This document shows, one piece after another, positions 6,201 to 54,291 of a DNA stretch of 64,000 nucleotides (positions are counted from its first letter, which is position 1; each line of letters begins with the position of its first letter). This DNA comes from Iphione sp. A-MEVVRFRX5 (taxonomy: Eukaryota), in contig OZ320314.1 of assembly GCA_976226885.1 (NCBI GenBank), positions 103,540,001-103,604,000 of the forward strand, read 5' to 3'. The translations under genes were made by a program, and so were the position numbers. Below the pieces are notes generated by a model. It searched no databases and had not been told where the DNA came from. It saw only the letters and a list, made by a program, of their open reading frames with translations.

Positions 6201-8133
6201 CATATGCATTTTTTTCTTCTTTTTTTTTTTTTTTGGGGGGGGGGGGGGTGACCCTCACTGCTAAGGAAATACAAGATGGGACGTCCCAGTCCCTTACCTT
6301 GGGGGCACCGTCCTCGCTGGAGACGAGCGTGAGGAAGAGGACGCAGTGTGGCAGGCCGCTGAGCGAGGGGGACGGTTGGCGCGTCGCCCGCTCGCCGCTC
6401 ACCAGCCGTACGAGCGCCTCGTTGACGACGGGCGACTTCCGCACGACGCCCGGGCGCGGGGTGGCCGCCGGCTGAATGGCCAGCTTCTGCAGCGTCAGCT
6501 TCACCTGCAGGACCGGGGAGGAAAAAAGTATGAGTACTCGAGTCCAAAATCAGCTCGTTGATTACGAGCTATGCTTTGCGGTGAGAAAAATATATAGATA
6601 CATATTTGTATGTATTCTCAACGCTTTTTTTGTGTTTACATGTCCATGTTAAGTGGATTAATCTGTTCTTCAAAAGAACGAAGTTGAAATTATTTGGTGA
6701 CCTGAAACATTTACAGTTCAACTATTTGTAGTTACGATGTTTATCAATGTAAGTCAACAATTACATACGGCAATTTTGTACAAAAAGGAAACATTTACCT
6801 CCTTGGCATACTCATGAGTCACCTGTTTACAGATGCAAACTGTAGAAGTAGATATATGGTTCTACGTATATAAAAATGAGCGCAAAAATCTACATTTATC
6901 TCAACCATTTGTGTACGTAATATTACATACCTCTTTTGGTGTAGTGATGGCAGAAAGGATGCTATCAAAGTTGTCAAAATTGACCTCCAAGTCATTGACG
7001 CACATAAGCCAGTCACCTGCGGCAATATGACAGAAGAAATGTCATCCCTGGGCCAAATATTAAATGTTTGTTAACAAAAAATCACAGGAAGTTACTACAC
7101 GTTATCTGAATAAATCTACAACGCAGCAATAGGTGATAAACCAACGGATGACGTAAGTCATGGGGTTATAACACCTGTAGCTGAGGAGAGCTCATTTAAA
7201 AAAAAATAGGCACAGTGTCGCTACGATTAGGAAAGACATGACAGAAATGAATATCAGGGCACAAGTACGTCTTCGGTGTTATAAACATTGATTTGTAGAT
7301 TTATGTCTTTCTTAGAACAAAGGTGAATACTTAAGGACAGATATCTCCTATATGTTTAAAAACCATGCCAACAGAGACCGGCATATACCACAAAGGACAG
7401 CCAGTCTGTCTGCCCGGCTATCATACCCACAGAAGTCTTACCTATCTTGACAAGCCCCGACCGCAGGGCCTCTCCCCCGGGTAACAGGCCCTGCACCATG
7501 ATGCGGCGGTCCTGCACCGTCCCGTTGGGCGGCGAGGGTCGCCCGCCCGACCCCCCGGAGCCCGCCGCCCTGGGGCCGAAGTAGCCAGGCACGATGCCGA
7601 AGAGCGTCTCGCAGAGTGTGGCGCGGCGGCCGTAGTTGTGGCGGTGAGGGTCGACGAAGAGCCGGACGTCCTTGGTGAGGCCAGTGGGCGCATCGTTGAA
7701 GGTCACCGTCAGGGGCGAGTTGTTGGGGTGGCGCTGCAACGGCTGCGACTGCTGGTGCTGCTGCTGGTTGCGCACATTGTTTCTGACAGTGTGACTGTCG
7801 CCTCGGCTCCTTCCATTTTGTAAGTCCACGTCGTTGTTGTTCTGTTTGCCCTTGGGGGTGATGATCTCCTTCACCTTCCTCCGGAGACCCTTCTTGGTCT
7901 TGGCCGGGGTGGCCGGGTCCCCCTGCTGCCTGGACGACGCCGCTGATGACGGCGCCGTCTCTCGCGGCGGCCGCCCGTTGTTGAGGCCGTTGTGCACGGT
8001 GGGGAGTGGAGGTCGGTGGTTCTCATCTGTCCCACCAGGAGGCGGGCCTGAGCTCGAACCTGTCGAGCCTGGCTCCACATAGAAGACATCACCCTTCTGG
8101 CCGACCGACCCCGCCCAGGGGGGTTCGAGAGAA
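202..8133 (-). CDS. INTU: Inturned planar cell polarity/CPLANE protein, exons 2-15 (PDZ + Longin domains); gene continues beyond the left edge
   Basis: GT-AG exons joined by hand with consistent phases: 8133-7442, 7016-6931, 6504-6298, 6003-5891, 5047-4958, 4420-4343, 3353-3176, 2784-2731, 2408-2124, 1960-1911, 1671-1570, 1022-898, 473-202 (plus the optional 6822-6799 microexon). Translation gives INTU-like segments: [128 protein letters not shown]. Identity is from recalled similarity to vertebrate INTU; no search was run. Confidence 0.93.
5201..5577 (+). mobile_element. ~377-bp MITE, copy 1
   Basis: TIRs GACCGTTCGCCTTTTTACGTCATT / AATGACGTAAAAAGGCGAAGGGTC, AATT on both flanks; homologous to 11021-11396. 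Confidence 0.85.
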
Positions 8134-8469
8134 CTGTGGACGAGAACAGCGAGAAATGTTAAGACTGCATGTCAGTAGATTACTGTCGTCATGGTATTTC
8201 CTCATAGACTACGTTCACGTAAGAAAAACCGTATTACAGGGCAAAAAAAGACAACGTATGATTGCCAATTTGTGTGGTGATAAACCAATTTGTCACGCCA
8301 TAAAATTCTTGCGGTGCGCGAAAACAGCTATACCTGAGATTACGGTTATTATAATTTTTTTTGGGGGGGGGGCATGTATTTTGAGCACCATTTTTAATTA
8401 TCTGAGCTTCAGGCAATACATTTTACTTTTCGCATACTGACATGCACATGCGCAAATCCGCGGACTGGA

Positions 8470-51500: not shown

Positions 51501-54291
51501 GGTTCGGTAGATCCATTAAAGACGCCTCCCCCTGGCCTCGTTGGTTCAAGGACAGGTGTTTCGTATCCTCCGTACTGACAGGCTCAATAACCTATTGTAT
51601 GTATGATATGCATAATTCAAGTAGTTGCCACGCTTGTGTCTGACAGCCTGTCTGCTCTACGCGCTCTCTGTCCAGATAAGACCGAACTGCTCTGGTTGCA
51701 GGCAGTGAACTGCTGTCGCTCTCGAGGACTCCAGGTAGTGTTGTGAGAGGCATCCAGCCAGAAAACCCGCAGCCTCCTACTTCACGGTGCCAAACGACGG
51801 CACCAAGCCGCCTCCGGCACCATCAGCCCTCCCTCCTCTCTCTGTACCCAGGCTCTCCACAGTTCTAAACAACAATTACCTGAGCTATTGTTGGACCGCT
51901 CTTTTGTGATAATGAATCATCAGAGTCCGCGGCCGTCAGGGACGGCACGGTCCAGCCTGCTGAAGGCGGCAGCTGCACCTGCAGTGCATGGACGTTGGTA
52001 CCGGCTTTGATTCCTGCAGGCCGGGCCTACATGTAGCCGCGTAGTAATGGTGGTGCTATTACACGCAGCGCGCGTGCAGGCGAACAAAGCAGAAGGTGTA
52101 GAATGAGAAGAGGAGGAATAGTAGGAGTACAGCATGGCTGCCCTCAACCCAATGGCCATGGTCGGGCACGTCTGATTAGAGCACGGCGTGGCGGCACAGA
52201 ACAATGAAAATCTTTCCTGGGCGATGTATAGAGGTGATGTAGTCTTGTACACACCTGTAGTAACTTAGGACTGCGGCGTCAGGGTGGTGATTAGAATGTC
52301 TTCACGTTCATACCACCGCTGTCTTCCATCTGTTTCAGAACTCGCCTCCTCCGCTCCCAAGGACCTGCCTCCATGGGGCTGCGGTTTTCAGTGGTGTTCA
52401 CTGCTAGGGGCGAGGGAAGAGGCATAGACTGCCATGGGTAGGTAGTGGCGGTGGTACCGAGGGGCGGCAGCTCGAGCGTTGGCGCAGAAGCAGGAGGAGG
52501 AGGAGAAGGAAGAGGAGGAGAAATAAGGGTAGGCGCCTAGTAGTAGCGGCAGGCGACGACCACCGCTCCCCTCTCTCGCGTGTCGCCGCCTCGACGACGT
52601 CGCTCTGATGTCGCCGCCGTCGAGGTCCCGGTCGACTTGCGGTCGGGGATAGGGGTCGGTAGTTTGGAGGCGGTGGGGCGACGAGGGCCAAGGGTAGTGA
52701 CCCGGCGCGACTTTCAGATGCAGAGAGAGGAGTAACCCTCCTCTTTACCCTTCCACTGCTGCCCTCTCACCGTCGCCTCATTATCCACGCCAACTAAGGG
52801 GCTCGGGCCGCTCCAACGACGTGCCAGTCGTTCCAGGTGATGTTCCCACGTGTCCACACTATACATATGTAAACAAATGTCCCCGGGCTGATACTGACAC
52901 AAGCTGGGAAGGACTAGGAACTACATGTATATACCACCAATGGCAGTGACACTGCCGCCGAGTATTGGTTAAGCATACACATACAGCACCTCCCACCTAG
53001 TGGGATCCAACTATTATCGATCATTCCGTCGCCCGACGCCTTGCTTCCCTCTCCGCTGTTAGTGGGGTCTGTTAATAGCACTTACAGATCAGAACGTCGC
53101 TCTTCTGTTGGCTCTCGGGCCATCTTCGAGTAAATACACATGTACCGTATGTATACATATATTGCCATATCATAGCCGCTTTATCTGAGCTATGTTTACT
53201 TCTTCAAGATGCGCATCGTTCTTCACCTCCAGAAATGGCAACAGCTTACCTGCGTATATACGGTCATTAACTGAAGTTGATCCTTTAGTGCTTCTCTTTA
53301 TTCGAAAAAGAGTGGAGTAGCACGCCATTTATATTGCTCCTGCATGCCTAAGGACATACATCATTCTGTTAATGTCTAGTACATACATGCGCTTAAAGCA
53401 CCGTCACACACCCACATCCGTAATCTCTCCTTCTTTCTGTCCTCTGGCCAGCAATGCCTGCAGCAAGTTTATTCATGTACATGTATGTATGCATATTAGC
53501 ATGGATGGGAGCCAGGTCCATACTTACCTTGCCCTCTTTATGTATTATAATGACTCCAAACGTGTTAGCTCGATCGGGACAACTTTAATAGATTGATCCA
53601 CGCGCTCCACTCCACGTCCTCCTGCAGCTCGACTTGAAAGCTTTATAGTTAATTAAGCCTATTCAGCGCTGTTTGTTGACTCGGCGGGAGTGCCGGTATA
53701 TCAGACTAAATAGTACTGGTGGCCTAAAGAAGCCATATCACAGCTCCCAGTGCCAGTCGTAATATTGCCTGGGGATTACCACGGTCAAAAGGCCCACACG
53801 AAAATATTTGACCTGATGCAAAAGAAAAATGAAAGAACCTCATTATTTTTTACTCACTTAGCATGTGACCAAGAAATATGTTGCCATTCTGTGATACATG
53901 TATTATTGATTTCACACGCAAGTTGTCTCTCTGTTGCTTGTATCTGGCTGTCTGTTTCTATTAAAGCGAACTTGTAAAGATGTTCACTTCGAGACTCACA
54001 TCTGTTATAGTAGCGCGCTTTAGGTGAATATATCCAAATGTATTCCAATAAACCTCCGAGAGTAAACAATGTATTGAAATGTAGGTTCCAAGACATCCAG
54101 ATAATGTATTTGACCAAGTTCTGTATTTCAATAAAAATTTGTTTTCCAGTCTTTGACTGTTTGCTGACGTGACGTTTTTATCTCGGACATTGTGTACCCA
54201 TGCTTCAATAATCTCATCTGTATATTTATCCATGTACAACGATAAATGTGCTTATACATGTATGTGCAGTGTGTATGGAACATAAGACAGG

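Follow-up and report, generated by a model that had tools for sequence, protein, structure and literature searches.

Probable alternative first coding exons upstream of a common exon of inturned (INTU) in Iphione sp.

Inturned (INTU) is a core CPLANE/Rab23-GEF (guanine nucleotide exchange factor) subunit, which is required for cilium assembly and is mutated in human ciliopathies. To our knowledge, studies of INTU use one protein form. In vertebrates, RefSeq/Gnomon models give two isoforms, X1 and X2, in which two unrelated first coding exons are joined at the same point to one LEPEW exon; both isoforms are database models. In the annelid Owenia fusiformis, the inturned model places its exons in series (1, 2, 3). 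Outside INTU, the protocadherin alpha/gamma and UGT1A clusters are organized such that the choice of promoter decides which of the 5' exons is joined to a shared acceptor further downstream. Here we describe a stretch of 64,000 nucleotides from Iphione sp. A-MEVVRFRX5 (contig OZ320314.1, positions 103,540,001 to 103,604,000), hereafter the window, which holds the 5' half of INTU on its minus strand.

The analysis indicates that INTU of this animal probably has at least three alternative ATG-initiated first coding exons, designated B, A and C, all feeding one acceptor at position 8133. The exons concerned are as follows.

7442-8133, minus strand: common INTU exon ("exon 2"), acceptor cag/T (slash, exon boundary) entered in phase 2, donor ATAG/GTAAGA
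51185-51267, minus strand: exon B, ATG-initiated, 27 residues plus 2 nucleotides, donor CAG/GTAAGC, phase 2
32255-32400, minus strand: exon A, ATG-initiated, 48 residues plus 2 nucleotides, donor AA/GTAAGC, phase 2
21612-21766, minus strand: exon C, ATG-initiated, 51 residues plus 2 nucleotides, donor CAG/GTGGGC, phase 2

B (51267-51185), A (32400-32255) and C (21766-21612) would be separate and unrelated 5' coding exons upstream of 8133. Transcription would begin before one of them by alternative promoter use, the donor of the chosen exon would be joined to the one acceptor at 8133, and any 5' exons lying further downstream, which have no acceptor, would be lost along with the intron. The INTU proteins so produced would be alike except for a short N-terminal peptide that precedes the conserved LEPxW-FYVE motif. 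The promoters and the actual splicing at this locus are what we infer from the DNA sequence.

The INTU locus and exons A, B and C

The exon at 8133-7442 is preceded by an acceptor in the context ...tccacag/TTC on the minus strand, and it codes for an LEPPW...GDVFYVE motif followed by the start of a PDZ-like domain. A HMMER search with this exon matched INTU proteins, on which PF19031-PF19033 were present. The best full-length match was "protein inturned" of O. fusiformis (P0029), and its tblastn high-scoring segment pairs were colinear with the window from 8129 down to about 1540 (1542). The arrangement characteristic of INTU, an N-terminal LEPxW...G[DE][LV]FY[LV]E followed by a PDZ-like domain and longin-domain exons, was found. 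On this motif and homology the exon at 8133 is assigned to INTU of an annelid-like animal, which upholds the identification made in the first-pass annotation of the stretch. The INTU reading frame fragments on related genomic contigs all begin a few residues before (L/F/Y)EPxW, and for this reason the intron ahead of that motif is considered to be conserved. A 2027-residue protein (P0002) matched the exon 2 query in 19 separate stretches, probably as a low-complexity or repeat artefact.

The upstream exons were compared with one Logan contig pair from the closest relative (L005/L006/L010/L011), reaching 15.4 kb upstream of exon 2, and with the loci L001/L002, L012-L014, L015 and the Owenia locus L009. 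Exon A has an orthologue in the closest relative (L010, minus strand, 15253-15111), which has 47 residues, starts with ATG and ends at a phase-2 donor scoring 11.3. Between the two, 16 codons carry synonymous differences only, and the core I-V-x-S-Y-T-x-R-F-K-Y-S-A-Y is identical. A third species also carries exon A (L012:21-181; z 8.6, 0/2000 shuffles). When a profile from these two other species was searched against the six-frame translation of the window, minus 32427-32254 was the sole significant match (E 1.8e-13), and the alignment spans exon A from the initiator methionine through the donor. A conserved element lies shortly upstream.

32460-32479, minus strand: conserved 20-nucleotide motif CCCGGATGTAAACAAGATGG, about 60 nucleotides upstream of the exon A ATG

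The motif is identical at 20/20 positions in the closest relative, where it occupies the colinear position. With an ETS-like and a YY1-like part recognized by eye, it may be a candidate core-promoter element. Nothing comparable was found upstream of C or B. The AAGATGG(C) core, which is YY1-like by eye, occurs on the minus strand at 32460-32479, 53120-53128 and 21770-21776, just upstream of or at the ATGs of exon A, of a candidate starting at 53123 (described below) and of exon C, respectively; among these copies, only that of exon A is conserved in the relative. These comparisons show that exon A is genuine, starts with ATG, codes for protein under selection and has a conserved element upstream; it is probably the main, canonical first coding exon of INTU in this clade. 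For annotation, the canonical first coding exon of INTU in this worm is most likely 32400-32255, and less likely the adjacent 524-residue open reading frame (ORF) considered below.

With residues 1-60 of the frog isoform X2 as the query, vertebrate INTU was retrieved with two types of N-terminus that share the same S-D-LEPEW junction. The X1 type is acidic and Ser-rich (Ser/Tyr-rich), and the X2 type reads M-F-x-x-G-R-Y-S-I-P-R-P-V-T-R-N-L-E-D-L-D-S-V-Q-S-I-L-L-H. X2 is annotated in frogs, turtles, birds, squamates, sharks, rays, coelacanth, lungfish and teleosts; mammals account for 0 of the 65 proteins listed for the X2 query, a count that is not evidence that mammals lack X2. From 32 distinct X2 first-exon peptides of vertebrates, with the residues of the common exon excluded, a profile was built and searched against 3985 six-frame pieces of the window. 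The first match was minus 51288-51184 with an E value of 0.011, followed by the next at 0.82, and the profile core was aligned to E-R-S-L-D-D-F-D-D-I-H-C-I-L of exon B. Pairwise shuffle tests of exon B against goby, conger, tree frog and the tail of Owenia exon 1 each gave 0/2000, with z of 6.4-7. Exon B is on the INTU strand upstream of exon 2 and begins with M-F, with the ATG aligned. The distance from the D-[FL]-D-[SD] motif to the junction is exactly seven residues in the window (...DDFDD-IHCILAN/), in Owenia exon 1 (...QDFDS-ISLIVKY/) and in vertebrates (...DLDS-VQSILLH/). The donor of exon B scores 11.3, and only 8 GT sites on the whole strand are so strong. Because the profile rank, the strand, the M-F start, the seven-residue spacing and the strong phase-2 donor combine, exon B is regarded as homologous to the exon with which isoform X2 of vertebrate INTU begins, and a chance match appears very unlikely. 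In the relatives, exon B was not found within the upstream flank of at most 10 kb. An ATG...GT phase-2 segment at L001:320-447 starts with M-F-D-Y, ends with ...R-H-F-E-D-F-T-Y-K-K-C-F-Y-L-Y and is B-like by eye. It was rejected as exon B, being not significant against exon B of the window (281/2000); against the conger X2 exon it gave 0/2000.

Exon C begins with M-N-S-G-F-I-LSTILEED and reads MNSGFILSTILEED..GDDL... in the window. Its orthologue in the closest relative (L005:197-288) reads MDSDALSTILEED...GDDI... and ends at the donor CAG/GTAGGA, also in phase 2. The conserved codons show third-position differences between the window and the relative, and the shuffle test gave z 5.4 and 0/2000. 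Same-strand blastn and tblastx comparisons of window positions 64000-6800 with the 16 kb of the relative gave colinear blocks only at the motif upstream of exon A, at A, at C (conserved block 21758-21725) and at exon 2. As no further conserved block lies between A, C and exon 2, A and C appear to have no conserved splicing partner other than exon 2. The preferred reading of C is a second first coding exon, specific to the clade and common to the window and at least the closest relative. A similarity between exon C and the N-terminus of the L012 exon A (DSxALST) was also considered and was not significant.

30693-30906: assembly gap (sole run of N in the window), in the intron sequence that separates exon A from exon C

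The gap overlaps no proposed exon. A gap-free contig of the related species carries the counterparts of A, C and exon 2 in unchanged order and orientation, and the scaffold join across 30693-30906 is therefore supported. Each of A, B and C starts with ATG, ends at a phase-2 donor and is compatible with one common acceptor, as alternative first exons would be, and A and C contain no conserved in-phase acceptor.

Candidate exons, intron phase and chance expectation

The first-pass annotation had listed six first exons joining 8133, namely A, B, C, a 524-residue exon (13393-11820) and two short ones (27087-27053 and 53123-53086). Its coordinates, start codons, GT donors, phases and stop-free joins were correct in every case: all six begin with ATG, are 2 modulo 3 nucleotides long, are followed by GT and run without a stop into exon 2. 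It had also called the run of phase-2 exons notable, and here the chance expectation gave a different answer. The minus strand upstream of 8133 was scanned for open segments that start with ATG, span 30 nucleotides or more and end at GT, with the donors scored by a generic 9-position matrix. The numbers of segments in phases 0/1/2 were as follows.

Donor score at least 0: 334/313/331
Donor score at least 5: 65/61/54
Donor score at least 7: 23/19/19

The three phases were equally common, and no excess of phase 2 was found among the ATG...GT segments at any donor threshold. The strand holds about 54-123 phase-2 candidates, of which the six are a hand-picked subset. Since the run of phase-2 segments matches chance, each exon needs independent evidence. 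More generally, runs of same-phase ATG...GT segments are expected by chance, and conservation or RNA is required before such a run counts.

By this standard the remaining short candidates fared differently from A, B and C.

27053-27087, minus strand: 11-residue candidate, no support, chance level
53086-53123, minus strand: 12-residue candidate, no support as a coding first exon
20710-20799, minus strand: 90-nucleotide phase 2-2 cassette, open in frame, not conserved

None of the three showed conservation in the relatives compared, and there is no support for reading them as anything other than chance segments of the kind that the scan predicts. The proposal of alternative first exons thus stood for A, B and C on comparative grounds and fell away for 27087-27053 and 53123-53086, while the 524-residue exon is kept as a putative exon of INTU. 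The codon-level conservation that had been suggested as a check was seen for exons A and C, and not for 27087-27053, 53123-53086 or 20799-20710; the last had been offered as an optional cassette and is open in phase 2-2. It had been feared that the two distal exons belong to another gene. For 51267-51185 this fear is allayed by its homology to the vertebrate X2 exon, while 53123-53086 is left with no coding support. The ATG of the latter sits in AAGATGGCC, the core of which is shared with the conserved motif upstream of exon A; speculatively, 53123-53086 could be a non-coding leader exon for exon B.

The shared phase has another origin. In Owenia, exon 1 ends with ...AAG TAC AG/GTATGA, the next exon has 102 nucleotides and is phase 2-2, and the LEPVW exon opens with tttcag/T, so that both 5' introns of the model are in phase 2. 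The A-type exons of the worm contigs all end in phase 2. In vertebrates, X1 and X2 part at the same codon, exactly at this junction, and the point of divergence suggests phase 2 for the vertebrate intron as well. From these comparisons the shared phase 2 is an ancient property of the intron ahead of the LEPxW exon and not a coincidence of this genome, and any exon feeding this intron must therefore end in phase 2.

Alternative, serial or single use of the 5' exons and the acidic reading frame

Several observations weigh against three alternative first exons. The similarity of exon A to the vertebrate X1 exon or to the second exon of Owenia was not significant. The match of exon B is short, with an E value of 0.011 over just 14 residues and 12.9 bits, which is marginal alone, and the vertebrate X2 profile did not detect Owenia exon 1. 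Exon C is supported by one relative, in which about 34 nucleotides are conserved. Together with the abundance of ATG...GT phase-2 segments by chance, the shortness of the B and C matches would suit a locus with a single first coding exon, A, where the conservation of C reflects a non-coding or regulatory role and its open frame is luck, the B match arose by chance and no alternative N-terminus exists. We consider this improbable, because the C block in both species starts with ATG, is open to a strong phase-2 donor and shows synonymous third-position changes, and because B ranks at the top of the 3985 six-frame pieces, on the right strand and with the ATG aligned, and has one of the 8 strongest donors, in the conserved phase and at exactly the conserved distance. 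The other observations that weigh against alternative use concern splicing in series. The Owenia model joins a B-like exon to an internal acceptor of an A-like acidic exon, running from exon 1 (B-like tail, phase 2) through the 102-nucleotide phase 2-2 exon to the LEPVW exon, and a 93-nucleotide phase 2-2 exon would arise in the window if the in-phase AG at 32349-32348 were used. The 5' exons could then be partly serial, from B to an internal acceptor of A (or C) and on to 8133, giving a mixture of cassette or hybrid exons and alternative promoters. This appears unlikely too, if slightly less so than a single first exon. The AG at 32349-32348 is not conserved and the acceptor is missing in the closest relative, where AGC is replaced by AAT; in the comparison of the window with this relative, no conserved in-phase acceptor was found within A or C. 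The residues upstream of 32349-32348, including Met-Ala, are conserved as coding, and in vertebrates the B-type exon joins the LEPEW exon directly. True alternative first exons are favoured on this evidence, and some serial splicing may occur in addition.

In Owenia (L009, 13202-13281), the frame of the second coding exon is open upstream of the annotated acceptor and contains M-E-M-A-R-Y-L-P-R-E-E, which recalls the M-A-R/N start of exon A, a weak likeness (z 2.8). The second exon of Owenia might also act as a first exon, by way of this in-frame upstream ATG.

The fourth long candidate is of a different kind.

11820-13393, minus strand: giant acidic ORF, 524 residues plus 2 nucleotides to AAG/GTTCGT; frame open 13603-11777

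The open frame from 13603 to 11777 has 609 codons, which cannot be accidental, and the sequence therefore codes, or recently coded, for a protein. It is acidic and of low complexity, with no Pfam family. A word search among proteins of 288-917 residues gave no homologue, there was no Atlas neighbour and no exact-product record, and the profiles of exons A, B and C did not match it. Its flanks have no repeats typical of a mobile element. We consider the odds roughly even between a lineage-specific fourth first exon of INTU and a separate gene, lineage-specific and with a single exon, that lies on the same strand within the INTU intron. A nested gene is suggested by the frame, which runs 14 codons past a weak donor (score 5.1) to its own stop at 11777, by GC-box-like and E-box-like motifs seen by eye just upstream, and by the absence of a counterpart: no long acidic ORF lies between exon A and exon 2 in the closest relative (L010), in L012 or in L015. 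L001 has a 248-residue acidic ORF 430 nucleotides upstream of exon 2, which ends with TCAAG/GTGAGG in phase 2 (score 11.3). As a homologue of the giant ORF it was rejected, since the likeness is one of composition only and 38/500 shuffles reach the observed score. The same L001 ORF also speaks against a nested gene, because its strong phase-2 donor overlaps the stop and long acidic first exons of INTU therefore probably exist in the wider group. In addition, no free-standing homologue of the giant ORF was found, and the first 100 nucleotides beyond its stop showed no poly(A) signal.

Repeats were noticed around both reading frames. In L001, tandem repeats of about 60 nucleotides occupy the 5' end of the acidic ORF and the whole of the 430-nucleotide intron (3050-3180 and 3925-4260). 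In the window, the intron between the giant ORF and exon 2 contains 27-nucleotide inverted repeats at 11017-11043 and 11374-11400, which are 89% complementary and 330 nucleotides apart, and are possibly like a miniature inverted-repeat transposable element. At the edge of the window, a 383-codon ORF on the minus strand (62695-63843) has a tyrosine-recombinase domain (Pfam Phage_integrase, E 2e-13), and the adjoining frame reads ...DLFASRLN...YASWHPDP...; together they look like a DIRS/Ngaro-type retroelement.

Comparison with known INTU isoforms and alternative-first-exon systems

If annelids really have the B-type N-terminus in common with sharks, frogs and birds, INTU has a second isoform of ancient origin. 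In that case the short conserved B motif could govern localisation, partner binding or stability, which is testable in Xenopus or zebrafish. More tentatively, and with a little less than even confidence, a pair of alternative N-termini, one of the acidic A type and one of the B type ([NS]L[ED]D[LF]D[SD][VI]xx[IV]L), each with its own promoter, may predate the protostome/deuterostome split; the intron would have retained its phase over more than 500 million years, the worm clade would have added C and perhaps a giant acidic fourth exon, and the B form of this core effector of ciliogenesis and planar polarity would be functionally distinct and as yet unstudied.

The first-pass annotation was not aware of a description of this arrangement for INTU. 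A literature search agreed in that no paper mentioning alternative INTU first exons or N-terminal isoforms was found, whereas in the databases X1 and X2 are already annotated for vertebrates. What appears to be new is that one alternative N-terminus of INTU is conserved between annelids and vertebrates and that an extra one exists in the worm clade, a modest advance.

An analogy with the protocadherin and UGT1 clusters had also been drawn, and it fits in the logic only. Those clusters consist of many tandem paralogous exons, each coding for a whole domain, with a shared promoter element. In contrast, the INTU locus has 3-4 exons over 43 kb, which are mutually dissimilar and mostly code for short peptides of 27-51 residues rather than domains. 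The A and C profiles matched nothing else in the window or among other INTU N-termini, and the B profile matched only B, so no paralogy among the first exons was detected. No Pfam family was found in exons A, B and C (48, 27 and 51 residues) or in the ORFs between exon B and exon 2. By sequence, then, the architecture is of the ordinary alternative-promoter, alternative-first-exon type, and the nearest known case is vertebrate INTU itself. The Owenia model resembles the window in its phase-2 5' introns, in the B-like tail of its exon 1 and in the acidic exon before LEPVW, and is the closest full-length INTU. Exon B of the window is like the vertebrate X2 exon (M-F...NL[ED]D[LF]DS[VI]xS[IV]LL), at an equal distance from the motif to the junction. 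Exon A, which is acidic and Ser/Tyr-rich, is like the vertebrate X1 exon in character, with homology not demonstrable. Unlike vertebrate X1/X2, the worm locus would add at least one conserved first exon, C, and possibly the giant acidic one.

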